A stretch of DNA of 64,000 bases, taken from positions 24,242,001 through 24,306,000 of the forward strand of contig NC_087256.1 of NCBI RefSeq assembly GCF_037042905.1, read 5' to 3'. This DNA comes from Lytechinus pictus (Eukaryota). The notes beneath the pieces were generated by a model, which was not told the DNA's origin, made no database searches, and saw nothing but the letters and a program-made list of their open reading frames with translations. Both the position numbers and the translations under genes were made by a program. This document shows, piece by piece, positions 14,301-64,000 of the stretch. Each line of letters starts with the position of its first letter. The first letter of the stretch is position 1.

Positions 14301-17300
14301 ATGACTACGTTTTGTGTCCATCGGCCAGTGGGACCAAGCCTTTACCAAGATTTCGGAGATCGCCATAAACTCATTTTCTCACTACTTTTTTAGAAATAGA
14401 GACGAGTCTACATGAATAAGGCAACCTTTTCAGTCGATCAGAACAAAGCAGTTCTTCAGAACTTGGGCCCTGTTCTTAAGCTTCGTTTTTAAGCGATTCT
14501 GATTCTGGCCTTGAAATCAGAGGGTAGTGTGTTCTAATCACTGGCGTAAATCCGTGTTGAGGGGTGGGGGGGATGACTGAAATATTTTGGCATTTTTTTT
14601 GCATTCATGTTTTTAGATATGCAAGGAATTGTAATTGATATGTCCACAATGGCGTACCGTGGGTCACGGTATTGTGGGGGCACCAGCAAAATTTTTGAAT
14701 CACTGAGTGAGCGCGCGAAGCGCGCTCAGTTGCTAGTTATTCTGACCTAATAGAGACATTTTAAGGACAATGTCATTGAACGGATATGTATCTCACTGAT
14801 CAAATAATGCGAGCGCGAAGCGCGAGCTGAATTTTTTTATATTCACACCTAAAAAGGGACATTATAATCAAATTTGCGTAATCATGATAGTTACCTGTCT
14901 CGCTAAACAATGCGAGCGCGAAGCGCGAGCTGAAATTTTCGTATAATTTGACCCCAGCAAACAGCGAGATTTTAAGGAATATATTTTAGGAATCCATTAA
15001 GAGTATGCATATCTCACCATAGTCATCTAATGCGAGTGCCAAGCGCTTGCTGATTTTATTAGAATTACATCTGAACACATGAAACACTTTTTGTAGTCAT
15101 TGCAATCATGATTATCATACGCACCTCACTAATCAAATATTGCGAGCGTGAAGCGTGAGCAGAAAATTTAGATAAGTTAGATAATTCAGACCTGAAGTGG
15201 GGCATTCTAAGGTTTCTTTGTAGGAATTAACTTGGACCATACGTATTTCATTAACCAAATGATGCGAGTGCGAAGCGCGAGCTGAAAATTTTTGATATTC
15301 AGATCAGAAAAAGGGACATTTTAAGGACTGATTTTAGGAATTCATGAAGAGCAGACATATCTCACCAATCCACTAATGCGAACGTAATCACAGACAGGAA
15401 ATGTTTTTATATATACGAAGACCTTAACATGGGGCAATCACTTTTTGAGTTATGTAAAAGAAGCATATGCCTATGTCACTACATAAAACAATGATAACTC
15501 AAGTGCTAGGAAATATATTTGGTTTATATTGACTTGAAAACGGGATGTTTTAGTACAACAGGATTATATATCTCGTTGAACAGACAATGCGAGCACCAGG
15601 AACAATGAAGACGTAGGCCCTGGGCAAATTATGTTTCATAAAGTTATGATAAAAATGTTTCTTATGTAATGTAACATAACATAATTATAATATGATATAA
15701 CATTATAATGAATAATACTTTCTTTTTTCCCACTACGTTTCTTTTCCTTTCTCCCTCTTTTCTCTTTTTCCCCATTTCCCCGGGGTTTTTTTTGTCAGCC
15801 GATGGGGGGAGCATGTGCCTCCCATGCCCCCCCCCCCCCCCCGTAGTTACGCCACTGTATGTCCATATGGCAAATACCCCTCCAATAGTATTATCTTTTA
15901 CCCCATGATGGTTTAATGATTTTATTAGAGATTACATTCAAAAAATTTTGACATTCAATCTTAATCCCTTCCCAAAGACCCCAACATCGATGAATTGGAA
16001 GAAACGGGGGTTTCTCTTCAATGTTATAATAAGGACATAAGTATTTCGTTTGGAAATGGTGAACTGGCTCTTTATTTGCATTTTATGATTCAATAATATT
16101 GTTTTATTTGTTAAGCGGTATTTTAGGAAGAATTTTCACCAATAAAACAATTATCTCTTGTGATTTTTTTAAATTTCTTTCGTAAAAAGTGGGGGGGATG
16201 ATTGTACAGGCCATCCCCCCCTCCTCGAAAAGTGGGGGGGATATATCCCCCCCATCCCCCCCGGGATTTACGCCAGTGGTTCTAATCCCAACGCTGCCGC
16301 ACGTCCTTTGGCAAAGAACGAATCCAACATTTGCCATTCTACACCCAGGTGTTAAATGGGTACCCGGTAGGATTCAAAAGCCCATGTTGTAAGCCCAGGC
16401 CAAGCACTAGCAACTGAGTCTTAAAACTCGTGTTGGAATGATTACAGGGAGTGGGAAAAGTGCTTTTTCTGCGAGCATGCTCGGATTCAAAGACCCGGTA
16501 ATATATCTAAAGTGCTTAGAGACGTTGATCCGATGTATTAAGCGATATATTAAAAAAAACAGCATTATCATAATGACTTACGATCTTGGTCATTACAATC
16601 GTTAAATCATGTTTGCTGTACATTAGTGTATATATATATATATTATTTTGTCAAGTGCATCGTGTGTGAATATTGAGTGATCATAATGATATAGTTTCAT
16701 ACTTTTCATCCAATCAACATAAAACTGATCCATGATAGTTAATGAGATCAATGGTTACGCTGTATTATATTTTTGACGATGGTGATAATGAAATGGTTTA
16801 AATATATTCATCGCCTGTAATCTCCCTTACCTGTTAATGCAAGACACACGCCCACAACTACAACATTAGTTGAAAAGGCACATATGAGCATGCAAGTCGA
16901 GCCGAGTATTGCTCCTCCTCCGGCGACCAGTCGGTCGTTCACCCTTTCTAGTATTAGAGATACAAGTGGACCTGCCAAAATAAATAAATAAACTTGTTCT
17001 TATTCTTCAAGAGGACGAATTAGGTGGTCTGTCATCATTTTTCATTCGGTGTCGGTTGATGTATGAAATGACTTATTTAGATAATTATTATTTACTTGAT
17101 AATCTTGGTCATAGACATCATGGGAATCAATTTTGACCATGTTAAACGTGATTATTACAATTGTGATGATAATCGTGATGATTATCATGACAGGAAGATA
17201 GGATTTATGAAATGAAGTTTGAGGCACATAATATACTTTGATGAATTCTTCCAAAAGTTCAGACTATTTTACCCAAATTGGCTCGCTCAAAATTGCAAAA

Positions 17301-31886: not shown

Positions 31887-33995
31887 CATATGTTTCCATT
31901 TGCATCTGGTGCAAACGTATAATGTTCCTATATGACACTGCTATCTGCGTGGAGTAGTTGGTTGTTTTTGTAGTAATTTGTAAGTTGAGGAAAGCCTTTT
32001 TTAACTGATTGCTGAGATATATAGACTCTTTTTTCCGCGAGAGAGTAGCGCTTTGGAAAAATTCCAATCTGAAGTTTCAAAACTCGCTTCATGGTGCTAT
32101 TCACTGTTGAGATAAAAGGGCATTAATTCTAATTATTGAGGTCGAATCACGACCTCAAACATTCGGACATTTCTTGTAATAAGACATGGAAATGAAACAT
32201 TTCGAGTATTTTTTAAATATGAAAAAAGATGTGTACCTAACTAAGGAATTAATGCCAGCTGTAGGTTCGAGCTGATTTTGTTTATATATAGGACCTTCTG
32301 ACCTGAAAAGGAACCTGATATGGTCAGCATTTAGTGACTTATGAATATGATAGGCCTACATATCTCGCCAATGAAATAATGCGAGCTCGAGGCTCGAGTT
32401 TAATATTTGTGATATCCCAACCCTGAAAACTGAAATTTTAAACATTTTTTTAACCAAAAATATATATAATGAACATTTGTTTAAAAAAAATAATTGATGC
32501 CAGCGCGAAACGCGAGGAAAAATTTGTTATTATTTCAAACTTAGATACTGGACATTCTAAACATTTTGAAAACCATAAACATGATAAGGTATACCTTACT
32601 CACTAATAATTGATAGAGCGCGAAGCACGTGCCAAAAATGTATTGATTTTCTAACCAAAAATGTATAATTTACTTCTAAAAACGTATATTCGTTAGAAAA
32701 AGACATATTTAATTTTGAAATGCATCCTATTTTGGAAAAGGATTAGTTTCCTGCGGCTATTATTATTTTTTTTTTTTTTGGGGGGGGGGTGGGGGGCACT
32801 TGGGGGTCATGTGTCCCCTGCTCCAAGTACGCGCCTCCCCTGTGATATAGTTATATCTCAATGTGTGACTAAATGATCAACACAGAACACTGAATTACCA
32901 CTTAAAATATGAATTGGGCAATAGATTATTTCTGGATTTCATTAGCTAATAGATTAAAGGTTCCCCCAAAGCTTGCTTAGTTTAAACCATAGCTGAAAAG
33001 CATATCGTTTTCCAAATACATAAAACTCAACAGTGATTGACTTGAAGAATTATTTTCTCTCTGTCTCTCCCTCTCTTTTTTTTTAAATCTTGCATCAGCT
33101 TTTTCATTTAAATTATTTTTGCACTTTTATATAATTTTTATTTGTGCCTCTCATTTGTATTTACATATGTAACATTGTGTAATTGTTCAATATATGCAGT
33201 CATTGTAAGCAGTGTTGGGCTAATTATATATTTTGATTTTACGAAAAATTATAGTTATATGCCTACTATTCGTATTTTCGGGATCTAGGGACCTTCTCCG
33301 ACTTATTGGACTTAGTTATTGAATACTTAGTTAATTTTCTATACACGTTCACTTTTTGAAATTGACATCTTAATCCAATTATTCTTTGTTTATCATGTAT
33401 GTATGTATGTATGTATTATTGTGAATTGTAATTCATCCAGTCACGGCAAAGTGTCAGATCAAGTTGTGGGCGGACTTGCTCCAGGGGCGGATTAGCCCCG
33501 CTCTCCCATACCTGATTTGTTAGATGTATCCTATTCATCAGTCACTAAATGCTTGCGCTTCGCGCTTGCGTAAATTCTTTAGTTATTTAATTAGATCAGA
33601 CATTTTTTTCATAACAAAAACTGGTCGTAATGTATTTTATTTTGTCTTATTACATAAAATATCCAGAAGTTTGAGATGGTGATTCGCGCTTGTAACATCT
33701 CGCAAAGGTGACATTTTGACATTAATATTCACCAAAAATCGAATTTCATTTTTTACAGATTTTTAAATTTTTCGGTAATCGTTTGCTCGCAGAAGAAATA
33801 AAGCATACATTTATGTGTAATCAATCACAAATCCCTTCAAAAAGGCTTTGCTCAAATTTAGTACCACAAAACTCACAATTACTTCACGCATATGATAATT
33901 TTTCGGTGAAAATATTCGTTTGCACCAAATGCCCATTTTGACATATAAGTTCCCTTTTTTGCTTCCCCCCCTCAACAAAAATACGTTCCACTGCC

Positions 33996-35877: not shown

Positions 35878-38600
35878 CATGGTGTCGATCGGTATTCTTG
35901 ATTGGGGGGGATGATTGACACAAATATTCTTGTGGATGGGGATCTTATAATATTACCCCCACTAAAATCACAAGTTAGGACATTTAGGAGTGGTTGATAT
36001 GCATGGTGTTCTTGGAAATCCCTTCATTGTTGCAGTGTATTGTATTTAAATAATTTTTTTTTAATTCAATTTGTGTTATACAAGTAAGCCCAGTGGCGTA
36101 CCGTGGGTCATGGCATCGGGGGGCACCAGCAAAAAATTTGAGTCTGTGAGCACGCGAAGCGCGCTCAGTTGCCAGGTATACTGACCTAATAGACACATTT
36201 TAAGGACAGTGCCATATATTAAACAGATATGTATCTCACTGATGAAATAATGCGAGCGCGAAGCGCGAGCTTAAAATTTTTGATATTCGGACGTAAAAAG
36301 GGACATTATAATCAACTTTTTGTAATCATGATACGTACCTATCTCGCTAAACAGTGTGAGCGCGAAGCGCGAGCTGAAATTTTTGTATATATTGACCCCA
36401 AACAGGGAGATTTAAGGACTATATTTAAGGAATCCACTACATATCTCACCACAGTCATCTAATGCGAGTGCTAAGCGCTTGCTGATTTTGTTGAAATTAC
36501 ACATGAAGCACTTGAAGTCATTGTAATCATGATTATTAACATACGCATCGCAATAATCAAGTATTGCGAGCGCGAAGCGCGAGTTGAAAATTTAGGAAAT
36601 TCAGACCTGAAAAGGGGCATTCTAAAGTTTGTTTGTAGGAATTCATTAAGACCATACGTATTTCATTAACCAAATGATGCGAGCGCGAAGCGCGACCTGA
36701 AAAGTTTTGATATTGAGATCAGAAAAAGGGGCATTTTAAGGACTGATTATAGGAATTCATGGAGAGCAGACATATCTCACTAATGCGAACATAAGCACGG
36801 ACAAGAAATGTTTTATATTAAGACCTTAAAATGTGGCAATCACTTTAAGTAGTCATGAAAAGAAGCATACTATTGCACATAAAATAATAATTCGAAGTGC
36901 GAGGAAGTATATTGAAAACAGGAGGTTTTAGTACCACAGGATTATATATCTCGTCAAAATTAAACAGACAATGTGAGCACCAGGAACAATGAAGACATGG
37001 ACCCTAATCAAATTATGTTTCATAAAGTTATGGAAAAAAATGCGTCTTATGTAATATAACAGAATTATAGTATAATATAACATCATAATGAACAATAATT
37101 TCTTCTTTCCCATTACATTTCCCTTCCTCTCTCCCTCTTTTTCTCCTTTTCCTCGTTTTTTTTTTGTCAGCCGATTGGGTGCATGGGCATGTGCCCCCCA
37201 TGCCCCCCCCCCGTAGTTACCCCACTGAGTGAGCCTATTCTAAACTCATACGAAAGAAAAAATGACAAAAATTGTCTGGACCATGTACAAAGTGATCTGT
37301 TTATTGAGCATGATGTATACAACTTCTCTCTTAAATCTAACCCGACTGGCAATATCTTTTTTCTTCTTAATGCATGATGATAAAATGCAGATTCGGACAA
37401 ATTAAGACTAACACAAATTACAAACTGTGTGGCTTCTCGTGCGCCATCGGGCTTACCGTCATTCCTTAGACAATTTTAACCCTGGATTTTAACACGTTTT
37501 AAATGTTTTATAAGTGCATGAAACAAAAACAAACATAAAAACAATCAAAACTCAACTGTCATCTTATGATATTTCTCCAACATCTTCTTGACTCATCAGT
37601 GTGTAATATCAGTTAATATATGTGTTAAAATGAAATTAACATACCGCATGAGTGTGCTCATATAGAATGCAAAACTGTCATCCCTTTCCAAACTCAAAAA
37701 AAGATTTCTTTTTGCCAAAATAAGAAAAAATCAACCAAGTTTGGTTATTCAAGTCCATGACAATAACAAGAATAACATGGCAAAAAACCCCTCCGATGTT
37801 CATATTCGAAGATACGCTTTAGAGAGAAATGAATGATTATTCTTTCTGAGACCATAAATTGATTTCACTTATTAAAAAATTGTAAAAATATGATCATATT
37901 ATATTGAGCTCACTGAACCTCAATATTTTCATGAGAGGTATCTGATGGGGTCACATGATAAAATGTTTAATATTCAAAAGGGTTGTAGATTAAATGGGAC
38001 AAACATCATGCACTTGGATGTGGGGAGGGGTAAATCTGAGAAAAGTTGTTTGTATTTTTTCAAGATCTACCCCTCTAGGATTTACGTCCATGGAGGTTTC
38101 CCTGTTTATCTTGCCACCCTTTTCCACCCGTTTATTTTTCCACCCTTTTGAATTAATTGATTTGTTTAAATCAATTTATTCACCACTGGTGGGATGGAAC
38201 ACCCTATCAACAAAAGTTTTTTTTCGTCGGGGTCCTTTTATGTCATGTGTTTAAAAAATATCATATACCGGTACATAAACATTTCATTCATTTTCATCTT
38301 GAACCTGCACCCATCTGTTTAAAAGTCCTGGAAAAGAATGTTTTTATTTAATAACAATATACACAAATTGCGAGGGAAACAAACTGATTGATGGCATACT
38401 ATAATCATCACTATAATCATCATTATCAAACTTTTCATTTTTTCATCATCATTATTACAATTTTTCTACCCTGAATTATTTGGGGGGGGGGGGATGATAA
38501 TACAGGCCATCCCCCCCCCACTTGAAATATTGGGGGGTATATCCCCCACCCCCCCCACCCCCCCCCCACCCCCCCCCCCCCCCCGTGATCGACACCCATG
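35878..38600. mobile_element. Non-autonomous hAT-type element (outer)
   Basis: TIR CATGG(G)TGTCGATC; perfect 8-bp TSD CCGTCGGG (35870-35877, 38601-38608); subterminal sequence resembles 14539-16278. Confidence 0.85.
36091..37227 (+). mobile_element. CAGTGGCGTA-family hAT-type element, nested in 35878-38600
   Basis: Homologous to 14647-15857; TSD AGTAAGCC/AGTGAGCC. Confidence 0.88.
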
Positions 38601-41162: not shown

Positions 41163-43167
41163 TTTGAATAAATGAATCTTTATTTCGTTTCAATTCCGAT
41201 ATCAAACAACAATAATAACAACAGTAAATTATTGGGATACAAGTAAATAGCAAAGAACAAAAGTAAATAATCACAGGATAATATACATAATACATGCACT
41301 ACTTTTTATGGAACATAAACACCCATGAGAAGAGATGGAAATGAAACGTGGTGACCTACTAAGAAGCTTAGCTTGTGGGCCATAGGCCACCAGCATGTTA
41401 AAAACTTACATTAGCAATCATTTTAAAACATCATAGAACAAGTAAACAAAAAATTGGAGTAAATAACCAAAGTACAGATATACATATTTACAAAAGATAC
41501 ACTAAAAAGTAACAAAAAGGTGAAATGCAGAATGCAAGCATTCTATTACACCTAAAGTATAAGAATCTGAAATTCGAAAAGAAGAAAGAAAAGAGGAAAA
41601 ATAAAGAAAATAGGCAGAGCTCTATTTTTGCATAGATAATTGTGGGAAGAATACAATTTATAAAGTTAGACGAGATATAACAAGCAGGCATTTGTTTACT
41701 GATTTAAGTATTTCTTCAGTAAATCGGTCTTTAACTTGTTTCTAAAAACACTAAGGCTAACTGATTGCTTCAATGAAGAAGGAAGGGAGTTCCATAATTT
41801 TGGCCCTGTATAAACAAATGTATTTAGCCGAAAACTAGTTTTGACCAATGGCAAGTGGAGAAAAGAAACTTGTCTTGTATAGTAAGAATGGATTTGGTCA
41901 TTTCTAACACATAGTGAATCAAGGGCAAGTGGAAGTTCTCTTTTATTTAATTGATACATAATGCAACCAAGGTTGAGATCAAATATATCATGTAAATTAA
42001 GGAACTTGTTTTCATAAAACAAAATATTAGTGTGAGATCGTGAATTTACTCCACATACTAGTCTAAGTACCCTTTTCTGGACTTTAAATAACCCATCTAA
42101 ATGAACTTTAGCAGCGTTACCCCAGGCAAGGAATATACTCTTCAATGAATTAATGACTCCTGAATTTCTGGAAAGAAGTTTACATAAATAGGATATGTGA
42201 ACTTTCCAGTTCAGCTTACTATCAATGTGTACCCCAAGGAATTTTGTACTCAAGACTTCAGTAATCTGAACATCACTGATTGTAATATTATCTGGCAATG
42301 TTGCTAGGGTGTTGCTGAATAACATGTAGTTTGTTTTAACAAGATTTAAGGAAAGCCTGTTAGCAATGATCCATTCGTTAACAGAAATCAATTCTGAATT
42401 GATAGTTTGCAATAAATTGCAGGGGTTCTTTTCAGAAAAAAAATATGCTTGAGTCATCTGCAAACAGGATAAATGAAAGGATTTTTGATGACTGAGGGAA
42501 ATCATTAATATATATGAGAAATAAGATAGGTCCAAGGAGTGAACCTTGTGGCACTCCACATGTAATTGACTGCATGGGAGACTTAACACCATTTAAAAAT
42601 ACAAACTGTTTTCTATCAGAGAGGTAGCTCTTGAACCACTCCAAAGCCTTACCCCGGAATCCATAGAGAGATAGTTTTATTATAAAAAAGGATGTCATGG
42701 TCAATCGTGTCGAAGGCTTTGGAGTAGTCTAGAAATATACCGACAGTATGTGGCCCATTATCTCTTGCGGAAGAAATTTTGTCGATAAAATGTAACAGAG
42801 CATGAGAGGTTGTATGTTTTTTCACGAAAACCAAATTGTTCAGGATATATTATATTATTAATTTTCAAAAATTTCATAACACGAACAGAAATTATCTTTT
42901 CAAGAATTTTAGATTAACATGTAAGAAGAGAGATGGGCCGGTAATTTCCAACTTCCTGAGGGTTTCCCTTTTTGTAAATCGGCACAACTTTGGCTATTTT
43001 CATACTCAAAGGAACGATTCCATGTACAATAGATAAATTGAATATATGAGTAATAGGAGAAACAATAACATCAATAACTTCTTTAATAAGCTTATTAGAT
43101 AGGCCATCATACCCAGCAGCCTTATTTGTTTTCAAATTATGAACAATGTCAATCACTTCTTTTTCAA
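41163..43167 (-). mobile_element. 5'-truncated, decayed LINE (CR1/L2-group ORF2 reverse transcriptase pseudogene) with 3' UTR
   Basis: Frameshifted fragments: [72 protein letters not shown] (plus TTTATT 41179-41184) near the 3' end, with ATTC-like tail. Confidence 0.9.
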
Positions 43168-46100
43168 CGTGGTGATCCTCGAATGCGTTCTCAATAAGAC
43201 AACGGTGATGATCAGGATCACCAAAGAAACAAAGTGAAAAACACCAATGACCATGAAGACCTTAGTGAAGGACTGAGTTAGGTCGAACAGATATCCTGAT
43301 AGAGGAAGAGAAAAAGATTTAAAAAAAAAAACAATGAAATTCGATAAATACCATCGGTACAAGTTGAATCAATCATCTTCTACCACCAATCGATCACGTG
43401 TTTGACATCACATACCATAAAACACTGCTGAAGAAACGTAGTACGTTATTGATCGAAATCATTTAATAGAATTAAATGCATAATTTTGTATAGATTTGCA
43501 AATCGTATCATGAGTTGAGACCCCTAGTCTACCGAGGGTTGATACGAAGGTTCATGGATTCGAATCCCAGCCACAGCATTATTTCCTTCAGCAAGCAATC
43601 GATCCACATTGTGCTTAACCCAACAGCACAAAATGGATACCTGGCAGGAATTCATTCCTTGAAATGGATGTGCGCTGTAGAAGACTTTCCAGGCTAACTC
43701 CAGGGTAACATAAAGTCCTTTGTAAGCGCATAGAGACGTTAGATGAAAACGGGAGATGCTTTTCTACAAGAATGAACATTATCATTACAATAACTGTACT
43801 AGAATATTGATGGAAATTATCATCGTCACTCAAATGTCATTGAGATGACATTTAGTCAATCCCGGGAGTCCTTTGTGAATGTATAACGTTAAAATCGAAA
43901 TTAAGTATATAAATACAAGTACCTGTCATGTAACCTGCTGAGGTTGCTCCTAATCCAGTAAAGAAAAATAGCATTGCAGAAGCTCGCCTGAATTTGACTG
44001 GGTCTAATGAAGTCTTCTTTACCATGGCAAAGGGCATAGTGTCTTCAGTAAAGAAACAGATGCCTTGGACGAACGCCAAACCAGCCCGTACAGGATACCC
44101 TGATCCGACGAAGTCGAGGAGAAAAGTCAGGGTGCAGACAATACTGACGGGAATGTATATCAGGAAAGGATCGACGTTTTTAAAAATGAGAATAATGAAT
44201 ACTGTTCTTCCTAAGATACCACCAATACCTGCCAAAGAAGATAAAAATACCGCATGTGAGCTGATAATTCCAAGGGATTCGGCATGGGGTACCAAGAACA
44301 GCATCCAACTGTACAATGCATATGAGAATAGGTAAAACGACGGCATGTTCAACAAGACCAGCCAGTCATGAAACGTAAGACCTCTGCAACAGAACGTATA
44401 CCAAGGTTCGGTATTGCCCTTCGATGTCCCTGCAGACGTCCCTGCCAGCTTGTCGTCGTCGTCTTCTTCGGTGATCAGTGGTAAGTGTTCAGTGGTCACA
44501 GCAGCATCAACGTCATCAAGCCAAATCTCTGAATGATCAGATCCTGCACTGCTTGACTGATGTTCCTGAGAAGGAATATCTTCACCCCTTGATCCCAGAG
44601 CGCTGTTATTTTTCGGTCGTATAAGCTTACTTGTCATCTCGCTATCTGTTCGGACCAGTCCCATTGTATTAGCTTCAGGACAATGACTTTTAATTTTCGT
44701 CATGATTGGTTTACGGATTATTGCAGCACACACCATGACGTGAAAACCAATACCGGCTAAGATCAGAAAACTTCCGTGGTACCCGTAAGCCTCTTCCGAT
44801 CTTTCTACGATGAACGGTATGAAGGTTGCACCTGCAGTCAGACCATACAAGGAAAGCGTGTTCATCATAACAAAGTTATCAGGGAAATAGTCATTTATGA
44901 TGAGCGCTGCGGGCAGGTAAATACAGGCAAAACCGGTCCCTAAAAATAAAATGGTGATAGAGAGAGGGGGATAGTAAACGACAGGTAAACTAAATAATAA
45001 TAATAACATGTAATATTTGTGTACCACTAAATAGAATGATTTTAATTCCTGCATTACTCCTACTTTTACCTCGGCTTCAGCACGGCTACCCTGATCGCGC
45101 GCTCGAGCATTCAAGATTATTTTTCCTACGCGGTCACAACACTTGGGTGGAAAGTGGCAAAGTGTAGATAAATGACTTGCCAGAAAACTGCCGGGGGTTA
45201 CATTTCTGAGAATTATCTAATGAGCAACACCTTTACATGTAGGCCTATAGCATCAGGTTTTATAAAAGAATGAAGAACAAACAGCTTGAATGAATTATTC
45301 AAATAAAGTGAAATTGATACACTAGAAATGAACTAGCCCTTACATCTTAACCAGGTACTATTCCACTATTGATCGAATGGCATATCTTAGACGATAGACA
45401 CACAGATATTTCGAACTATCTTGATCTTGAAAGTGTGAACAATGATTCAAACTCTACATCAGTTCATATCTCGTCGTCCTATTGTCTCCTATACTCTCGC
45501 CAATCTATCGACATGGACTTCAAAAAAATCCTTGATATCTAGTATTTCACCAAGAACTCGGAGATCGCCATGGAATAATTTCCTCACTACTTGTTTATTT
45601 GCCGGCCAGATGGAACCGGACAGGATGATTCTTCCTGCAAGGGTCAAAACTGTGGTGTCCATCAGGGACCAAAATAGGCCCTCTTCATTTTCGCCCTCTT
45701 AACGATTTACGAGGATCAAGTGAGCTTTACTTTGAAATAGAGACGGGTCTGCATAAGGCAACCTTCTCCCTCAATCAATCGAAACAAACAAACCAGTTCG
45801 AACTCGTTTATAATAACATCTTTAACGCGCTTCCTATTTTTATGTCGTCCCGATGTAATAAGCGCTACATAAAAGCGGAATATCATTATCATAAGGAATT
45901 GTCACTTTAATTTTGTAATATCATGTTATCTGTACACTAGAACAATAAGTTCAGTGGTCACGTTTTGATATGTTGCTTTTTTAATGATGATAGTAAAATA
46001 TTGTTAAAAATATATTCATCGCTCGTGATCTCCCTTACCTGTTAATGCAAGACCCACGCCCACAACTACAGTATTAGTTGAAAAGGCACATATGAGTAGG

Positions 46101-48793
46101 CAAGTCACGCTGAGTATTGCTCCTCCCCCGGCGACTAGTCGATCGTTCATCCTTTCCAGTATTAGAGATACTATTGGACCTGTCAAACAAAGGGAAATCG
46201 TTACACCATGATTTCGATCAGAATTTCATAACAGTTATAATCAACACTTCAATTTGAAATCTCCTGAACGTGCATGACATTATTGCAATCAATCATTCGA
46301 TGATGAATATTATATATATTAGCCAGAAACAGTTATGATATTAAGGCTATGAAATACATAATGTGTGTTTTGGACACGTAATTTTTTCGTCTGCTTATAT
46401 TTTATTTATTCGTTAATCGTTATATAAATCCTCTTCCCAAACATGGAATGGGCTGAACACTTCGGGATATAATATTTGTCAGTTTAAATTGCCCATTTCA
46501 AAGATTTATTTTCTTTTTAATTTTTTTAAAACCAGTATAAAAGAATCGACGCTTGAGAAAAAAAATGACGCCCACTTCAATTTTGAACATTGAAATTTTG
46601 ATGTCATAATTATACTAAAGTAAGATTTACATTAATACCGAAGCTGGCTTGTGATTGTGTAACGTCATTTCGTCATCTCTGTCACGTCCGTGCTCAATGA
46701 CCAGCCCTGAATCCAAACCTAGCACCTTTCCACTCAAAATTTGAACGCAACTCGATTGTCATGATGTATGATTTTGTTGTGGCAGGGATCAAGGGGGAAT
46801 GGGGTCAAGCAGTGGCGTACCGTGGGTCACGGCATTGGGGGGCACCAGCAAAAATTTCGAGGCACTTAGGGAGCGCGCGAAGCGCGCTCAGTTGCCAGGT
46901 ATACTGACCTAATAAAGATATTTTAAGGACATGCAGTGCCATTAATCGGATATGTATCTCACTGGTTAAATAATGCGAGCGCAAAGCGCGAGCTGAAAAT
47001 TTTTGATATTCAGATCTAAAAAGGGACATTATAAGCAAATTTGTTTGTAATCATGATACGTAACTGTCTCGCTAAACAAACAATGCGAGCGCAAAGCGCG
47101 AGCTGAAATTTTTGTATATATTGACCCTAAAAAAAATTTAAGGACTATATTTTAGGAATCCATTAAAAGTATAAATATCTCACCATAGTCATCTAACACA
47201 TAAGCACTTTTGTAGTCATTGTAATCATAATTATCATACGAACCTCACTAATCAAATACTGCGAGCGCGAAGCGCGAGCTGAAAATTTAGGAAATTCAGA
47301 CCCGAAGAGGGGCATTCTAAGGCTTGTTTGTAGGAATTCACTAAGACCCTACGTCTTTCACTAAGCAAATGATGCGAGCGCGAGCGAGAGCTGAACATTT
47401 TTTATAAGATCAGAAAAATTGACAATTTAACGACTGATTTTAAGAATTCATGAAGAGCAGACATCTCACCAATCCACTAATGCGAACGTTAGCACGGACA
47501 GGAAATGTTTTATATTAAGACCTTAAAATAGGGCAATCACTTTTAGTAGTCATGAAAAAGAAGCATATGTCACTACATAAAACAATTATAACTCGAATTG
47601 CGAGGAAATATATTTGGTGTATATTGATTTGAACACGGGAGGTTTTAGTACAACAGGATTATATATCTCGTTAAACAGTCTATGCGAGCATTAGGAACAA
47701 TGAAGACACAATGAAGCAAATAATGTTTCATAAAGTTATGAAAGAAATGCTTCTTATGTAATATAACATAACATAATATAATATAACGTTAGAATGAACG
47801 ATAATTTCTTCTTTCCCCACTACTTTTCTCTTCCTTTCTTCCATTTTTTCTCTTTTTCCCCGATTTTTTTTTTTTGGCCAGCCGATTGGGGGGCACGTGC
47901 CCCCCCCCCCATGCCCCCCATGTCCCACCCCCCCCCCCCGTAGTTACGCCACTGGGGTCAAGGGACCTTGCTCTCTGTTGTGGTGGTCCTTGACTTCTTT
48001 ATTGTTTTGGCAGAAAAAAATCAAAGCTGTGCATGCTCTCCCTCCCCCCCCCCCTCGACATGCTCGATAAATCCTGGATCCTCACTTGCCACTATGTTTT
48101 TGTGTTTGTGTGTGTGTGTGTGATTTTAGATCGGGGAGTGGTAGGGGGGTACCCGCGTTAACCCACCTTCTAAAAATATCCTAAACAGGTACGCTTTGCA
48201 TTTAAATATTTTAGAACATTAACAGCGATTTGGCACCTTTGATCAAATTTCTCACCAAAAATTGGCAAATTATCGACAGTCGGCGAAAATGTCTCTACTT
48301 TATAGATTTTTTTAAATCCATGATATTATATTGAAACCCGTTGATTACATGAATATCAGAGCTACAACAGAAAATAATTTCCAATTAACGGGTTAGGTTG
48401 GGGTGCACACTTTATGTTGCACACGGGAGGAAAGGGTAATACATGTATTCAAATTGCACATGGGCGAAATCAACGTCAATATTATCATTCTGGTAAAAAA
48501 AATGTGAATACCTGAACAAATACAGGAACTTGCATATTGGTATTTTAGTGTGGGGCTCATCGTCATTCAAACATGAAAACCTACTTACTTGCGAGGTATG
48601 TGAGGGTGGATGGTAGGCTGCAGATGAACCCAACAATGGTGAAGCTTGAGTTTAATTTCACCACCATCTCATTGAGAAGAACACCAAACGATTTCGCGAT
48701 GCCTCCAACAATGATCAGAATAACAAATTTACAAAATACGAGAACGTACCCCCGCCGCCAATTCAAAATAATTCCTTCCGATGGCGGCTTCAT
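43153..48793 (-). CDS. SLC16/MCT-like transporter, diverged paralogue, copy 4 (exons 48793-48589, 46179-46039, 44939-43923, 43295-43153)
   Basis: Homologous exons with conserved splice sites and many substitutions (e.g. FCKFVILIIVGGIAKSFGV). C-terminus RITTLKKK* runs into LINE sequence. Confidence 0.87.
46810..47954 (+). mobile_element. CAGTGGCGTA-family hAT-type element in intron 1 of copy 4
   Basis: TIRs present; perfect TSD GGGTCAAG (46802-46809, 47955-47962). Confidence 0.9.
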
Positions 48794-52271: not shown

Positions 52272-55200
52272 ATGGATCTGTTCGTCGTAATTCTGACCAC
52301 CTTGGTCGTAGCTACGGCTGCCAACAACGCCACACTGTACACGGTGGAGGAAGCATTGGAAGACCAGTATATTGTCGTGCTGAAGGTAAGATGCTATACG
52401 TTTGATATCACGAGAAAACATGGTCTGACTGTGATACTTGTTCGACTCAAAAGTACAAAACTAAAATCTGTAATGCACGCAGGTAATTGACCTGCTGCCC
52501 TTTAAAATAGTCTTAGTATATCAGACCTGGGAGTTGGGAGAGAAGCTGCTTGTTCCAACTACTAAATGCTGAATATATATCTAGGATATATATCTAGGAT
52601 CTGTATTCTCCAAGTTGCATGGTTGTCGATAATGTCACATCCCCACTTGTTCTTTTGTATTTTATTATATGAAATTAGGTTTATTCAAATGTTTTCCTCC
52701 AAGAACTAGAAAAATTGGATTGACAACTGATTTAGTACATTAGATATTTATTGCTACAACTTATTTCATTATAAGGGAGACATATTATTCACACAAGTAT
52801 GAAATAATGACAAAATTATGATTTTATGTAATAACATAAGAAAACGAAAAGTGGGGATGTGACACCATCAGCCCACCTAATGAATATTCATGACGACTGT
52901 TTTCACAAAATATTGCTACATTTTAAACTTCAATAACTTTATCATTTGTTATCCGATTTTGATGAAATTTTCGGCATTTTGCTCAGTGAATTCTACTCTA
53001 TGAATTAAGATATAAATATTTTCAGCTTGGACCATCCCTTTAATCATGGAGTACAATCGTGCGTAGGGATCGTATTCAGAACGTATAAGAGTAGGCATAA
53101 AGTATGTAGAGTATAGGCATAAAGAGGAGGCATAAAGAGTAGGCATAAAGGGGAGGGTGCTCTTTACCTGGGGACTGAGGGTTGGGAGGTAGAACATCAC
53201 CTTTTTTATCATTGTTTTTTTCTCTTGTCATTTAATACATCTTGTTAATATTCCATTTTATAATTGTTGCAACGCATCAGTATTAATTTCAGGTATCTTT
53301 GAAGTTTGATGTATAATTTGTATAAGTATATGGGATATGGATTTATTGTATAACTTATAATCGTGTTTCAAATCATTTCTAAAACTTGTTTAGGAATGTG
53401 AATATGTATTTTGATTTGAGAGAATACAATAAAAACATCCTTTAAAAAATAATATCGTATCAGATCGATCGAGGCGATCGTTCCGATTGTAGAAATGTTC
53501 GAATGGTTCAAAAAAATTAGCGATCAGTGACGGAAGCCAAGGCCAATCGTGGCGTTCGTAACAGATCGCACAGAGGTGGGAACGGGGTATAAGCCAATTG
53601 TTATATGCTTCATCTGCCAAAGCTTTAATTATATTGTGATGTTTATAAAGACTTGGGCATCTGTAATATCCAGTTTTATGCAGGTCTTTCTCTTGGCCCT
53701 CCTTTGTTCGATTATCTAATCTATCTCGAATCATACCTAATCATGTCGACATTTTTCTTTATGAATATAGTTTTGAATCTAAGCATATCTACTTTCGAGA
53801 TTTGTTTAAGTAATAAGATTTACATAAGGAAGGATTATTGTCTTCATGGTATTGATACTTTTCATCCTGATTTGGTGGCACATATACTGTACACATCACA
53901 GTAAATCTGAAATCGTGAAATAAGTGTCTTATGAAGAAAACGTTGATGCAGATAGAGGTTGGTGAATGTAAAAAACTGTCAAATTACAAATATGAAATAA
54001 TCATATCAATTAAAAAAAAACTATTTACAATCGCTGTAACGGTAGTATTTAAAACACCAGTGTATTCATGATTCACGTCAATCTTTATCAAAACTTGTAT
54101 ATAATTATGAATGGGTACCTACTCCAGGCTGAAAATAATATGTGTTTAGGTGATGGAGAAAAATCAGACAAACAAAACACTGAAAATTTCATCAAAAAAC
54201 GGACATAGCTTTGCATTATTTCGGTGAAACATGAATATGCAATGGGCTAGCTGATGATGCACATAATATATCCACACTTTTCATGCTTATTCTTTTGTAA
54301 TTTATTACATGAAAATGATGAAATCATATATCTTTATTCAAATCTTGTCCCCCAAGATTGAAAATATCGGATTGACAAATGATTAAATGCATATAACATA
54401 TTCATCGCTGCAACTTATTTTGTTTAAAAGTGAGACATGTCATACACACATGCATGGTAGCATCCAGGATTTTCCTTTAAAAAAAGGGGAGCACATTTCT
54501 TCAGAATTTTTTTTTTGACAAGCAAAAAAAGGGGGGCTTTCGCCGGCGTATGCACATCTTAATATATACAAATATTATTCTGAATCCACATAAATAAAAA
54601 AATATTTGAATATATTTTCACTCTCAGCCAATATATACTGATGAAAATGTTGAAGCAATCAAGCGAATGATCCTAGATGACGTTTCTGGAGTCTATTTTG
54701 GTTCTTCCATCAGGCATACCTACACCAACGCCATCAAGGGTTTCTCGGCTACGCTAACCCAAAGGGCTCTCGAAAAGGTAGGCCTTGATTATGGGGCAAA
54801 AATGATTGTAGACACTGTTGAGAACTTAAACAGGGAAAATCGTTAGAAATCATGATTTGAAAGTTGAAAAGGGGTAAACTGAGGAAAAGATGTTATCGAG
54901 AGAAAATGCATTAATGTTGACAATGATGACGTATGAACGGTATTGATAGTAATAATCACAATGAATGTCTGACGACGGCTATCATGACGATGATGTTGAT
55001 GATGATGATGGTGATGATGATGATTATGATGCATGATGATGATGAGGAGAAGGATGATGATGATGATGATGATCGTGACGGTGGTGGTGGTGATGATGAT
55101 GATGATGATGATGGTGGTATACTGGGGACACTTATTCAGATATGAAATTGGAAGTTATCAAGTTTGATACTATCTTTTTTCTATCTTTGCATTTCAAGTA

Positions 55201-58200
55201 CTATACAGTACACAATCATTGCGAATTATGATCCCCTCGAATTAAAATATCATCATTGATTAACATAATTTCTTTAAACATATTTATATCTCTCTGCAAA
55301 TATACTTCTCGTTGGTATATCTTGTCATAGCTACTATCGAGAGAAGAGATAGAATACATAACCCAAGATGGCGTCGTCCGTACCTCATCCGTTAAATCAT
55401 GGGGCTTGGATCGTATTGATCAGCGATATCTACCTCTAGACGGGACAGCAGATTTTACAGGTATTAACATATTCACACTGCAAAAACACCGGTGTTGATT
55501 TAACACCAACTTGGTATCTATATCGGTCCACATCAGAGAGGTGTTGAAAAAACACCGGTTTGGTGTTAGGCTAACACGAATTCAGCATTTATGCAACACC
55601 AATTATTGTTAAACTAATATCGGTTTGATTCTTAGATACTTGGCTCGTGTTAAATCAACACCGGCGTTTTTGCAGTGCATCTATGATATCTGCAGAGGGT
55701 GTTGTATGATATTATTTAATATTTATGAGATTTGACCAATGAGATTTGATCAAACAAGAATATATACATATATGTTCAAAATAAATTATAAAAGCTGAAT
55801 AGCGAGACGTATTATTCAGATCATGAAAGTTATATCCATGTCTTATGAAAAAGGTGCGCAATGTACGAAAGGCATTCTACGGGGTCGCATTAATATAACT
55901 TACGGGATGTGCCCTCATCTTTTTCTTTTTTTAATTCAGAGCCTTTAAATAAATTATGAATTAAGACTAATCATCTGGCACATGGGCCTATGGACATCCT
56001 GGGAGGGGTAATCAAGTAACTCTTTCTTTCTTATCCATCTTAACAGGTGACGGTACAGGTATCCATGCGTATATCATCGACACAGGGATCTATCCTGAAA
56101 GCGTATACTTTAATGGCAGAGCCAGTGTTGCCTTTGATGCGTACCGTGAAGAGGGGGCTGAAGATTACGTGAGTATTTATATGAGGGATTATTTTGAAAC
56201 TAGTTAGTCCGACGATTGGTGTGACCAATGGACGTAGAGGGCGTCAATGGCACTTTATGCTCGTTAGGTGTGACGACGAAGTATACTTCGGATACAATTC
56301 AACCGACGACAATTAAGAGGGAGAAATTACCACATCAGATTGGGATGCAAAATGAACACCTTTATTCAACAAGGCCTAGGCTGAACATGCCGGCTAATAT
56401 TTATACAATCATATGGTAGCTTCAAACAAACCAAACACAAACATTGGCGTAATACATTCTTCTTTCTTCCATCTTCATCTATGGAAAGCGAATTACCCAA
56501 ACACTGTGCTGCACCGAATTACAAGCACTACATTCTAGACTAAACAACCCTACAAATCGCATGATTCGAGTATCTAAAATAGTTCAAGTATTTCACTAGA
56601 AATCTGCATAAAAAGCACAAACTAGTATGTAACAACACTGCATGTATGGCCATGAACATGTTAAACAACAAACCTACACAATCAAGTAAAAAAAATACAA
56701 TACACGTATCTGCATAACTCTAGTTAGACTAGTATACTACAAAAGGCAATAGCTAATATAAATATGCAAGTTTAAAGGCATGTAAACTGTTCATTAACGT
56801 TAAATGAACAAACAATACCTACAACAACCAATATACAAATGCTTCTTCGTCCATCAACTTCTTACCGTGCATGACCACAAAAAAAATTACACAAAGGCCA
56901 AACATATGCTTAAAAAAAATACATCTATAAGGTATTTCTAAATTGACCAATATCTACTCACATTTCCATAACAGCGTGCCATTACAGGTAAACACAATAG
57001 TCAACCAATAAATCCGAATCAAAAGTTATTCCTTCCAATAGTTAAAAAAATGATGATCCATATTACTATCCCTCTTAATAAAAACAAATTATACACAGTA
57101 ACCATAAACCAAAATTCAAAACCGTAAAATTCAGGCATGTCGTGAAAAACAGTTCTCTCTTCCACTTGACCTACACTGATAAACCGTGTAAACAAGCTGA
57201 AACACATCTTAACTATGATATGCACTGTTGTGCCACCTGTATATCATAATTGTAAGGAACAATACAAAACAGGTACCTGTAACAGGGCGTATACAAGCTA
57301 AAAAACAAGTAAAACCAAATCTAAAAGGCATAAACACAAATTATGCACATGAAAACAGCTACACCATGGAGCGAAAAGGTGCGATCAAATATACTGGAAA
57401 TATCACAAATGAGGCCTTCATGTACATAAACCTGTCAACAATAAAAATCAAGAGTTCAAATCTAAACTATCAGTATTAAACAAAACAATAGCATAAAATT
57501 CCATTATGTAATAAGCTTACGGCTTACATCAGTATCCCAAAATAACAATAGCACAATCATAACAAACAAAAATATCTCACTCAAGGAATATTTACAATTT
57601 TTTTTACACAACTTCACTGGTCAGTGTTAAGTCCAATAAAAACTTACATGAGTACCCTTGGCTATTGTTAAAAAAAAATAACAAAATGTATGACAAAAAT
57701 AACCAACATAAATAACTGTACAGAAATTAAACTATATGTGTACAACTGGAGGCCCACTGCACCACCAACTGGTAAAAATAAAAAAACGATATCAAACTGG
57801 ACAAGATTAAAACATGTCTAAAATACTAACAGATCATGTGGTTATGGCATTAACATTAAAATGATAAAGAAACCAACAAAAACACTGTCATAAATATACA
57901 AAGACAAAGATTACAAATCGACAAGGAATAAATCACCATCAATATAGTCAATAACTGCGAATGTTCGAAAAAAGAGTAACAGCGGTCAAGTGAAAACAGT
58001 AAAAATAGTCCAACAATTCTTGCGGCGTAGAATGCGACGTGACCGGCTGCTGCTAACTAAAAACACTGATGCAGGGGACAGGCTGGGGGTGTGGAGGGGC
58101 CGGGGGAGGTGGGGTAATATCCGGCGCATAGCTAGCAAAGCGACCTATGTCTGGGCCTATGTCTGGACCTATGGACAACAGGTGTTGTTCCGAAGCAGAC

Positions 58201-61200
58201 CAAGTAGCGATGAGGGGTTACCTCGAGGATCATATAGAGCAGCGGCCATGGGGACCCAAGGTCGCGAAAGTCCATAGGCAAGTCGTAGTGAGGCCATCAA
58301 AATTCCTGTAGTAGGGCCCATCTTGAGGGTGGTGTGATGACAATCTCGGGCAGTTCCACTGGTACATGAAGTGGAGACATCGCGAACACGTTGGACGTCG
58401 GGGGGTCGACCCATGGGAACCGAGATGTTGGTACTCATAAGAACTGTACCCAGGCTGGGGATCACATCAGAGGCGGTATCCCTCACAGGCTGGTAGGTGG
58501 AGTCATCATGGTATCGGTCTAGAGGACATTGGAATTCCTCATCCTGGACAGTGGTGGCTATGGCATCAACCACAAAAGAGCTGGAGTGAACAACACCATG
58601 CTGGTAAATATGGACATCTGGGGGGTGTCCTTGGGGGACCAGGGCATCCTCAAGCTGAAGAGAATGTGGTGGATCCTGACGTAGATCAGGGATGGTACTT
58701 TGCTCAAAGCAGTCCATGGTGAACTTCCGATCAGCACCTGGATCAATGGCTCTAGTTGGGTTAACTGGAGATAACTGAATGTGAGACGATGGCTCGAGCA
58801 TATACAGGCGCAGTTGATGTGTTGTCATGTCAACGGAGGTACTGCTCGCTTGGCTGATAGCGAGACCGGCTATTCTATCATTCGTACATGCGAACTGAAC
58901 GGAGGTATTGTTAGTTTGGCCGATAGCGAGATCGAGAACGGCTATTCTATCATTAGAACATGCGAACCGAACAGAGGTATTGTTAGTTTGGCCGATAGCG
59001 AGATCGAGAACGGCTAGCCTATCGTTCGAATGTGTGAATCGAAAACGAGTGCCTGTATGTGAATGGTGCATGCACTGTTCGGGCGTGTGATGAGTGAACA
59101 GTGTATCAGAGCGCAAGAGCCTATCAGCCCCGTCAATGCAGGTAGAAGTTGGCACAATCTGGAAACCAGGAGTACTGCCAGGGATAACTGACAAGTCTTT
59201 GCACGTTTCATCTCTCTCTGATGAACCAACTTAGCGAACATTGCTATCAACAACATCACAGAAATTCAACTGATCTTTACTCGCACCAAGTGTGCAAGTG
59301 CCTGATAACATGTCAAGTGAAGGGGGATCACATCCCAGTCCAACAGTGAGTTCATGACCTTGGAAACGATCAGGCTCCGATAAACAATCATCATCGGTAG
59401 GAATACCCGGATTACATACCACATCATTGTGAGAACCATGATCATCATTAGCTACATGCATTGCCGACAACTCAGCAGCGCAACCATCAAGATTAACAGA
59501 ATGTGTTACAAGGTCGGTTAAATCTAAATCTCCGGACGATATAGCTCTAGACCCATCTAACTCAACGCTAAACCTCGAAGAATCGCTAGTGTGAACAGGC
59601 CTACTCCAATCACCTGTCACTCCAATGTTACGACCATAATGAAACACGTCATGACTACTTCTTCCATCTTCTCGCAAAGCAACGTCATCAACATCACGAC
59701 TGGGGATACCACCTTCGTCTGCATGTACAAAGCTAAACTCCTTGGCATTGTCTTTACGTTTATTTTCATCACTTCCTTCATCAGATCTCAACTCATCATT
59801 AACATTGTCTTCATGTTTATTTTCATCACTTCCTACATCACATCTCAACTCATTATCATTGACATTGTCTTCATGTTTATTTACATCACTTCCTTCATCA
59901 CATCTCAACTCAATATCATTGTCTTCGTGTTTATTTTCATCACATCTTTCAACGAATCTCAACTCATTATCATTGACATTGTCTTCAAGTTTATTTTCAA
60001 CACTTCTTTCATCACATCTGAACACATTGACTTCATATTTATTCTGATCACTTCTAATTCGATCATTACATCTGAACTCATTATCATTGACGTTGTCTTC
60101 GTGTTTATTTTCATCACTTCCTTCATCACATCTCAACTCACTGACATTATTTTTCTCACGTCCTGCATGTCTCAATTCATTGTCATTCAACTCATCTTCA
60201 CAACAATCAAGACTTTGAGTGTGACTGACATGATATTGGTAATTGTCATTAGCTAGCATTTGTCTGTCAAAACCAAAATGTATGCAAACAAGATCCCATA
60301 TGTCTGCAAGGGAAGTGGACTTATTTACAATAGAACCTCTGGCGATAATCGGGCAAGAAGCTGAAATTTGCCCCAGCATGAGTTCCAAAACCACAACTTT
60401 CTGAGCGGCTGTCTTACCGCCAGCAACGTCAAAGGAATCGTCAACAAAACCCCGTACGGTATTTGCCTTCGACTTCCTTTGCCATGAAATACTCTCCGAT
60501 AGAAAAGGCAAAAAATCAGTGTATGAACACAAATTCATCATTAAACTACGCTTCCACTCTAGGAAGGATTCGGGAGTCTCGTACCGACTCAACCTGCGCA
60601 ACTGTGCGGGCGCTTCCGCTGACTGCGTCATCGTATCGTACTATACGTGAGGCTATCAAAGCGTTACCTGTGTGTCGCTAACGCTGATGGAGCGATGAAT
60701 CAGCCAGTTCAAATTGCAAAAATCACTACAGCTATAGTCCTAAACTGTCGATGCGTGACCCAGTTTTGGCCTAAAAATTCCTATGTGGCAGGGAACGAAC
60801 CTAGCGCTGACACCACGACAATTAAGAGGGAGAAATTACCACATCAGATTGGGATGCAAAATGAACACCTTTATTCAACAAGGCCTAGGCTGAACATGCC
60901 GGCTAATATTTATACAATCATATGGTAGCTTCAAACAAACCAAACACAAACATTGGCGCGAAAGTTATGTCTGGTATAGACCTAGTTTCGGTACGTGTGG
61001 CTGCTGGTCACTGATTTCCCTATTTCAGATTTGCATGACATTACTGAGACAAATTACTAGTATACGAACAAGAGAAGGTTATTCCATAAATTATGTGTAA
61101 GATTATTCATAATGTGTGCACGGTATTTGTGGGGTCAGGGAATTAATATTGTTCTAAGATTGGTAGCTTGTTTCGGTTTTGCTTTGGTTGGTCGGGGTTT

Positions 61201-62118: not shown

Positions 62119-64000
62119 GTATAGGTACCAATTATGCGGTGTCCTTAAAAAGCCCACCTTAATGCAATATATCCATTATTATAGTAGAGCATATTCTTTA
62201 ACAACCTGAAAAAAGGGATCTGAGATAGAAATGTTTAACCCTAATAGGCCCGGGGCGGATTCCACCCCCAGGTACGCAATCAAGAAAATACATAACATTG
62301 TGTATCATTTACTAACTGCACGTCAGACCAAAAATTGCACAACTTGAATTCATGTACAAATCCAATGCAAATTGTACTTTTAGCCAAAATTCATAAAACA
62401 AACACAAACAACCGTATCTTTTTTCCCCCTATGACCTTACAAGCTCAGAAAGGATAAAGGCTTGTCTACAAAAATCTCTGTAGTTGGCACGAAAGTCGTT
62501 TTGCTATGGAAAGAGAAAAACACTAGAGAATGGAAAAGCTTCACTGAGTGAGTTTTTGTCTAGCTACATCATCTACTTACTATTTCAATCTCTTGTCTTC
62601 TTGAAGCAACTTGCAACTTCCATTGAAAACCACGTATAATTAATAACTGTTGCCTGATGTTAATTAACAATACTCTTGTTTTTCTATATACATCCAACCA
62701 GAAGCTACTTATAACTCACCTTGAATTATTGATATACTTTGTTCATTTAAAACATGAACGCTGTTCATGTTTGTCACTATGTCAATGATCGTTAATCTGT
62801 TTAAATACTACAGTGTAATAATTTTGAGTGCCTATAATGCATTTTGTTTGTGTACAATATAGACATATAGACGTTTTGATAGCAGAGATAAATTTTTTTC
62901 TATCTGATGCTATCAACATAAAAATTCTGATCTATCTTTGGCCAGAAAATAACTCATATATCTCTATCAATGGCTTTGCAATTACAATCTATATGCTTTT
63001 GGAACATTTGTTCTGGAGTGAAAGGTTCAATCCTATTATTAATATTTTAGCTATTCAACTCCTATGGTTATATCTGCCATTCTCCCGATACATTTTCGGG
63101 CAAATCCTTAAATACCGATCATTCGGCTTGTTGTTTTTGGGCTTGTCATCTTTTCTAGCTGAGGCTATTTATCACATGTAACATTTATTCACAAAATTAT
63201 GTAACTTATATACATGTTATTTGAGTATCTTAATTGCATTTTCTATATACAATATTGCTTGATTTGTTTCTAGCAAGAGATAGGTCTTCTTGCCGAAATT
63301 GTTCGGCTCTTCAAGTTGTCTTGCTTACAGATAGGCCTTGCTTGCCGAAATTCTTCGGCTCGCCAAGTTATCTTGTTTGGCCGTCTTAGCCTGTCATATG
63401 CTCATTGTTTACGCATCCCTCTTTTTTTCTTGTCTTATACGAAATATAGCTATATCTCATAAAGATGTTCATACGAAAATAAAATACTATTTTATCTTAA
63501 TTGAGAAGCTTTTAGGATTTTGTACTTGCATGATTTTCCTAATACTTAGTTTATATTATTACCTGTATAATAGCTTCCTTCAGAATGATTCAATACTTCT
63601 AGTAAATTACAACAGTTTGACCATTTTGTTGCCTACAATGACTTGTAACCCTTACTTTGGCAATTATTGGTGAGTGATTGTTACACAGCGAATTTGGCAT
63701 ATTTCTTTTTAACATCAAGTTTTGCCTGTAAAATGGAACTTCAATTAATGCTCTTGAAGTGTTTAGACTAGGTATACATAACTACATAACGATTTTCTCA
63801 CAATTAACAGTACTTATCCCTTCTTCATAGCTTGTTATAAGAAGCAATCATGAAAATTGTTATAGAATTTGGCTTCTAAACAAGAACTTCAATTTTATGT
63901 TGTGAGGTATATCTTCAGCTTTTGTATTTTCTGATTATCTGGTAATCATGAATCAAATGTTTTCATATAGTGTGATTATCACTTTAACGCGACAGCTGCA

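Follow-up and report, generated by a model that had tools for sequence, protein, structure and literature searches.

Troyka is a group of long terminal repeat (LTR) retrotransposons whose signature consists of LTRs with 5'-CG...CG-3' ends together with duplications of the target site (TSDs) that are 3 bp long (Kojima 2025, J Gen Virol 106:002143, PMC12440569). According to that description, the LTR begins with CGCCA in 573 of 603 cases and ends in TGGCG in 522 and in TGTCG in 23, the latter including a sea urchin lineage, with TAACG as a further 3' variant; LTRs span 100-400 bp and interiors 1553-7691 bp. The Gag protein carries a zinc finger specific to the group, CX2CX8-10HX4C, with a spacing of 8-10 residues, and the Pol domains follow the order protease, reverse transcriptase (RT), RNase H and integrase (PMC12440569). 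Sea urchins are the source of 62 of the 70 non-autonomous Troyka elements, and the group is present in two Temnopleuroida species (PMC12440569, Table 1). We analyzed a stretch of 64,000 nucleotides of the sea urchin Lytechinus pictus (RefSeq assembly GCF_037042905.1, contig NC_087256.1, forward-strand positions 24,242,001 to 24,306,000), hereafter called the window, and all coordinates are counted from its first letter. The segment 56304-60961 is very probably a single insertion, on the minus strand, of a non-autonomous Troyka LTR retrotransposon into this genome.

The element is bounded by two 143-bp repeats that are identical at 143 of 143 positions, the right-hand repeat being the 5' LTR, since the element runs on the minus strand. 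Read in the direction of the element, the LTR begins with CGCCAATG and has the form 5'-CGCCA...TGTCG-3', and on the plus strand its first bases are CGACAAT and its last ATTGGCG. Both flanks read CGA, and a duplication of 4 bp is ruled out by the next bases (TTCG vs TCGG in element orientation). A single 3-bp flank match has a chance of 1/64 by itself, and the 3-bp pattern is repeated at two independent related insertions, described below. The repeat is also specific to these two places, as a 32-nt LTR probe occurred exactly twice in the window, where shuffled sequences gave an expectation of 0. Inside the LTR, TATAAA is located at positions 45-50 (60909-60914 of the window in the 5' LTR) and AATAAA downstream of it at 84-89, an order consistent with a U3-R-U5 layout. 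The first-pass annotation of this stretch had already reported, by eye, the identical LTRs, the CG...CG termini, the 3-bp TSD, a primer binding site (PBS) and a polypurine tract (PPT), and all of them were confirmed; its statement that 3-bp TSDs and CG termini mark Troyka agrees with the published description (PMC12440569) and with the element itself. The minus-strand orientation, the single frame split by a TAA, and the T-rich non-coding last ~1.7 kb are additions to that annotation.

Compared with the published description, the CGCCA start is the predominant Troyka 5' terminus, TGTCG is a listed 3' variant, the duplication is 3 bp long, and the LTR of 143 bp and the interior of 4366 bp lie inside the reported ranges. 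The host (Echinoidea, Temnopleuroida) is an aquatic metazoan of a phylum with known Troyka. In its LTR ends, duplication, sizes and host, the element agrees with the group as far as a pol-less element can. It is possibly a recent copy. Since 0 differences in just 143 bp still allow an LTR divergence of up to ~3/143, or 2% (95% upper bound), the earlier wording, "very young", is compatible with the data but poorly resolved.

The termini were further compared with those of five related loci found through their proteins. The locus L001 of Lytechinus variegatus, which encodes XP_041472468.1 (642 amino acids, aa), has LTRs of ~113 bp that are ~95% identical, with ends CGCCAAT...CTGGCG, a CCG duplication and a PBS that starts with TGGTTGCAGCG. 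In L002, an ENA contig encoding P0158 (1259 aa), the 200-bp LTRs are identical, with ends CGCCAG...TTGGCG, a CAA duplication and the PBS start TGGTGGCAGCGG. Two LTRs were found in L003 (P0066, 1613 aa; CGCCAAT...TAACG, PBS start TGGTGAGGG), and one LTR on the contig in L004 (P0009, 1626 aa; CGCCAGTC...ACTGGCG, PBS start TGGTGGCAGC) and in L005 (P0001, whose N-terminal domain is 73% identical to that of the window protein; CGCCAATG...ATTGGCG, PBS start TGGTGACAGCGC); no TSD was visible in L003, L004 or L005. Hence, the CGCCA start is common to 5/5 related loci, and a 3-bp duplication is found in both loci with visible flanks (L001 and L002). In L004 and L005, TGGTG comes directly after the LTR end, and the PPT layout of the window element, a purine run, ~7 nt and then CGCC, was also observed in L001, L002, L003, L004 and L005. 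The contigs of two relatives whose proteins have no zinc finger, L006 and L007, showed no recognizable LTR.

These comparisons bear on whether the segment could be a Gypsy, BEL or Copia element with its ends misplaced by 1-2 bases, in which case the CG...CG ends and the 3-bp duplication would be artefactual. The former placement of Troyka under Gypsy in Repbase (PMC12440569) speaks for such a reading, yet we consider it scarcely credible, given that the exact repeat, a PBS starting with TGG right after the LTR, and the flanks together pin the boundaries on either side. Moreover, there is no TG...CA pair at or near the ends, the CGCCA start is shared by the five relatives, and the related Gag-Pol proteins have the zinc finger spacing specific to Troyka.

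As a separate observation on the relatives, three short contigs carry a PPT before the LTR and a PBS after it (L003:7330-7571, L004:520-800 and L005:1-210), and the second LTR of L003 is again trailed by a PBS and leader. This context hints at elements arranged in tandem, at circular forms, or at a collapse across LTRs during assembly.

The interior was searched for the enzymes of an autonomous element. Pfam returned nothing for either of the two long open reading frames (ORFs). When the window was searched by tblastn with ten related proteins, seven of them Gag-Pol proteins 1200-1650 residues in length and the other three shorter, the matches were confined to 60167-60631, corresponding to the first ~120-150 residues, and no similarity to protease, RT, RNase H or integrase was detected anywhere in the window. 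A Gag zinc finger, of either the Troyka or the classical pattern, is also absent from the translated frame. Therefore, the element, 4.65 kb in overall size, keeps its LTRs, PBS and PPT while being devoid of protease, RT, RNase H and integrase, as the first-pass annotation had proposed for the last three. Its further proposal, a non-autonomous derivative, is likewise supported at the sequence level, because no pol was found in the window and because the L. variegatus relative, L001, is pol-less with the same layout. The occurrence of this layout in L. variegatus points to a property of the family rather than to a deletion peculiar to the window copy. No autonomous partner was found inside the 64-kb window.

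In place of pol, the element carries a long open frame. The coding region consists of one frame of ~820 codons, running on the minus strand from an ATG at 60631 to 58169 and containing one internal TAA, which divides it into ORF1 and a second part. The chance of 466 codons without a stop is ~(61/64)^466 = 2e-10, indicating that the frame codes, or did so recently. Within the acidic tail of ORF1, there are ~7 copies of an acidic unit of 54-60 nt (18-20 aa) at 59742-60195, with spacings of 60, 57, 60, 54, 114 and 60, every one of them a multiple of 3. The second part of the frame has a 72-nt (24-aa) repeat in 2.4 copies at 58861-59030. Neither the ORF1 tail nor the second-part ORF had a Pfam or PDB match, and a comparison of the ORF tails with 166 related proteins gave only a weak L. 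variegatus match, in which P0002 residues 453-560 are colinear with residues 182-290 of the 341-aa ORF (28% identity, E=1e-4).

The length and content of this frame are relevant to the idea that a full-length autonomous Troyka was inserted and then lost pol by deletion in place, leaving a dead relic. Internally deleted derivatives have been reported for the group (Kojima, PMC12440569), and a single copy was seen in the window, both of which are consistent with that idea. Nevertheless, we regard it as very improbable. The identical LTRs leave little time for decay, and no remnant was found of the C-terminal half of Gag, the zinc finger, the protease, RT, RNase H or integrase; instead, there is an open frame of ~700 codons interrupted by a single stop. 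In addition, the same pol-less layout with diverged sequence in the L. variegatus relative means that the layout predates the insertion in the window.

The start of ORF1 connects the element to Gag. An exhaustive HMMER search of ORF1 residues 1-140 against 1.84 billion representative proteins yielded 517 matches (E<=1e-3), of which 182 reached E<=1e-10, with a best E of ~1e-37. The matched query span was nearly always ~residues 5-122, and it was located at the N-terminus of the matched protein. A word-index protein search with the whole of ORF1 and with residues 1-125 gave no match, but it also missed the 642-aa L. variegatus protein (58% identical, 121 residues), whose length was inside the permitted range, so that its negative outcome carries little weight. 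The exact ORF1 sequence is not on record in public assemblies. The long matches P0009, P0047, P0066, P0016, P0129, P0144 and P0145 contain aspartic protease, RVT_1, RNase H and integrase zinc-binding domains, in this order, and the Gag-Pol proteins that share the N-terminal domain (N-domain) are 1200-1650 aa long. Among the 54 matches of at least 300 aa, the Troyka-type finger CX2CX8-10HX4C was present in 33, at ~residue 220-380, and the classical CX2CX4HX4C in none (0/54); most of the 33 finger-bearing proteins have a protease D[ST]GA motif ~90 residues past the finger. The other 21 long matches, without a finger, resemble an N-domain joined to another tail, and some of them may be fragments. 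The first-pass annotation had made its reading depend on a likeness of ORF1 to retroelement Gag, and residues 1-122 were indeed found to be homologous to Gag-Pol N-termini.

The conservation of the N-domain was evaluated in an alignment of 46 sequences, in which the window protein retains 16 of the 17 positions listed as invariant or close to it. The N-domains of the window and L005 show a nonsynonymous divergence (dN) of 0.185 and a synonymous divergence (dS) of 0.595, a ratio of 0.31 over 98 codons, a small sample in which L005 is a truncated copy; this points to purifying selection on the N-domain. With the 46-sequence alignment, AlphaFold2 produced a confident all-helical model of the N-domain (predicted local distance difference test, pLDDT, 89.9; predicted template modeling score, pTM, 0.80), and the model from the single sequence was unusable (pLDDT 43). 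No Pfam family matched the N-domain alignment, no PDB sequence matched its profile, and the Gag regions of the autonomous relatives have no Pfam family either. The N-domain is accordingly classed here as Gag by its homology to Gag-Pol N-termini, and not by a capsid fold.

A Gag-derived sequence under constraint might also be a domesticated host gene, of the Arc or PNMA kind, lying between repeats by chance. The dN/dS below 1 of the N-domain and the annotation of the L. variegatus relative XP_041472468.1 as an ordinary gene ("uncharacterized protein LOC121421741") could be read in that way. What makes such a gene extremely improbable is that the window and L. variegatus copies are each flanked by LTRs, a PBS, a PPT and 3-bp duplications, and the duplications differ (CGA vs CCG), indicating independent insertions and not orthologous genes. 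The window copy, in addition, has an in-frame stop.

Two gene models of other genomes include related sequences. In L. variegatus, the NCBI model LOC121421741 (L001:6001-16131, CM031023.1) corresponds to the ORF of a Troyka-type non-autonomous element between its LTRs, and ~8.2 kb of unrelated sequence that splits this ORF (6577-14757) appears as an "intron" in the model. In the clam Ruditapes philippinarum, the protein P0067 (XP_060568064.1, "exportin-5-like, partial") has a Troyka Gag N-domain at residues 433-513, and the gene model is probably chimeric, with a piece of a transposon incorporated.

The priming signals and the remaining parts of the interior are given in the table below. The PBS begins with TGGTGTCAGCGC, a TGG start of the tRNA type, and the complementary tRNA 3' end includes CCA. 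The T-rich 3' stretch is similar in composition to the 1.9-kb counterpart of the L. variegatus relative (41% T), and no sequence similarity between the two non-coding stretches was detectable.

Table. Features of the Troyka element in the window, in plus-strand order
Feature	Coordinates	Strand	Remarks
TSD, left copy	56304..56306	.	CGA on the plus strand, TCG in element orientation; same as 60959-60961
3' LTR, 143 bp	56307..56449	-	143/143 identical to the 5' LTR; reads 5'-CGCCAATG...AATTGTCG-3' in element orientation
PPT, 20 nt	56457..56476	-	GAAGATGGAAGAAAGAAGAA, then TGTATTA (7 nt), then the 3' LTR
Non-coding 3' part of the interior, ~1.7 kb	56477..58168	-	No ORF >95 aa; 42% T on the element strand
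Second frame part after the stop, 353 codons	58169..59230	-	Same frame as ORF1
Single in-frame TAA	59231..59233	-	Divides the frame into 466 + 353 codons
ORF1 tail, aa 123-466	59234..60265	-	Acidic, repeat-rich
ORF1 aa 1-122, Troyka Gag N-domain	60266..60631	-	Homology to Gag-Pol N-termini
5' leader, PBS to start codon, 166 nt	60632..60797	-	Nucleotide identity of ~76% with the L. variegatus leader; clearly alignable to the ENA contig L005
PBS	60798..60815	-	TGGTGTCAGCGCTAGGTT, directly adjoins the 5' LTR; complementary to tRNA 3' end ...GCGCUGACACCA
5' LTR, 143 bp	60816..60958	-	Exact repeat of 56307-56449
TSD, right copy	60959..60961	.	CGA

Several observations weigh against the assignment of this segment to a mobile, non-autonomous Troyka. 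Only one copy of the element is contained in the 64-kb window, and a sensitive BLASTN search found neither a third copy nor a solo LTR within it. The TGTCG at the 3' end is a minority variant, and the close relatives L005 and L001 end in TGGCG. A tRNA scan and an Rfam scan gave no match, and with that no primer tRNA. Because of the in-frame stop, this copy may yield just a 466-aa product. Finally, when the N-domain model was compared by Foldseek with the PDB and BFVD, no structure matched below E=2, and no likeness to a capsid was seen.

If the segment is a non-autonomous Troyka insertion, its cycle might be envisaged as follows. Transcription by RNA polymerase II would begin in the 5' LTR, downstream of its TATAAA, and run into the 3' LTR, where the RNA would end past the AATAAA. 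A tRNA of the host with the 3' end ...GCGCUGACACCA would anneal to the PBS and prime reverse transcription, the PPT would prime the plus strand, and RT, RNase H and integrase would be supplied in trans by an autonomous Troyka elsewhere in the genome. The integrase of this partner would recognize the CGCCA...TGTCG ends, and its staggered cut would yield the 3-bp duplication. Of Gag, the product of the element itself would keep only the first ~122 residues, joined to a rapidly evolving tail that is rich in repeats. Since the N-domain has been retained under constraint, we suggest that it most likely helps the product or the RNA of the element to enter particles formed by the Gag-Pol of the partner; an inhibitory role is possible.

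A more far-reaching proposal is that the Gag N-domain could be a self-sufficient module, either hijacking the particles of the partner or acting as a dominant-negative brake on the autonomous element. Its confident fold without a PDB or BFVD match, together with purifying selection in many pol-less Troyka derivatives (21 of the 54 long matches have no finger), suggests that such a module may exist, and on balance we consider it unlikely. Truncated Gag proteins act as such a brake in yeast Ty1 and mouse Fv1. If the proposal were true, a new fold would underlie a parasite of a parasite, or a system of restriction, in sea urchin genomes.

The surroundings of the element were also inspected. Four monocarboxylate-transporter-like genes lie in tandem on the minus strand of the window, with exons 98-100% identical to L. 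pictus proteins. Over 1607-28460 and 43174-48793, also on the minus strand, three near-identical ~10-kb tandem copies of a four-exon transporter-like gene were observed, with 95-100% identity in most of the repeat blocks listed, and the fourth copy is diverged (~84-96% at the protein level); the gene set is a recent tandem amplification. The element is located ~7.5 kb past the fourth copy's first coding exon, and its insertion site looks intergenic. On the minus strand at 41696-42592, a 298-aa ORF resembles by eye the C-terminal tail of a non-LTR reverse transcriptase, a likeness left unconfirmed by Pfam, which gave no match at E<=0.01. A dispersed, locally tandem repeat of ~102-110 nt occurs in 10 copies with 61-89% identity (14775-15331, 32347-32448, 36218-36746 and 46941-47328). 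Closer to the element, there are an (ATG)n microsatellite of 43 units at 54984-55113 and, at 55465-55688, a pair of 56-nt inverted repeats, 112 nt apart and 80% complementary, which suggests a miniature inverted-repeat transposable element (MITE) or a hairpin. A 52-nt tandem repeat in 1.9 copies lies at 63278-63375.

The importance of the element is modest. It represents, in textbook-clean form, a group overlooked by standard LTR finders, since these look for TG...CA ends with duplications of 4-6 bp. L. pictus is a genetic-model sea urchin, and the identical LTRs hint that the Troyka machinery may still be active there, in which case insertions could be useful as polymorphic markers and would be a possible source of mutations in laboratory lines. 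It is also of practical relevance that NCBI gene models in L. variegatus and R. philippinarum include Troyka Gag-derived ORFs labeled as host genes.

As a kind, the element is not new, since non-autonomous Troyka elements of sea urchins were described in 2025 (PMC12440569), and its family has possibly been deposited already. It has the same ends, 3-bp duplication and sizes as those elements and, like them, no functional Pol, so that there is no difference in kind. One point goes beyond PMC12440569, in which the encoded products of the non-autonomous elements are not described: the window element was found to encode a conserved Gag N-domain and a repeat-rich tail, and sea urchin non-autonomous elements can be seen to encode a conserved Gag N-domain of ~120 residues followed by a variable tail.

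The closest named relative, L001 of L. variegatus, resembles the window element in its N-domain (58% identical), its long tail ORF and its lack of pol, and also in its leader (~76% identical), in LTRs with common blocks, in a 3-bp duplication, in a PBS of the TGGT... type and in a T-rich non-coding stretch of ~1.9 kb before the 3' LTR. It differs in belonging to another family or subfamily, with an LTR of ~113 bp that ends in TGGCG and not in TGTCG, and with an ORF that is interrupted by ~8.2 kb and lacks an in-frame stop at the corresponding position; its ~95% LTR identity indicates an older copy. The autonomous Troyka Gag-Pol elements (P0009, 1626 aa; P0047, 1651 aa; P0066, 1613 aa; loci L004 and L003) are 42-45% identical to the window protein over the N-terminal ~120 residues and share with it the CGCCA LTR start, the TGGTG PBS start and the PPT layout. 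They differ in having the rest of Gag, with CX2CX8-10HX4C, and protease, RT, RNase H and integrase, none of which is present in the window element. Large retrotransposon derivatives (LARD) and terminal-repeat retrotransposons in miniature (TRIM) of plants are likewise LTR-bearing, pol-less and dependent on the enzymes of an autonomous partner, and their interiors are non-coding. In contrast to these, the L. pictus element retains a long open frame, in which a conserved domain derived from Gag is encoded.

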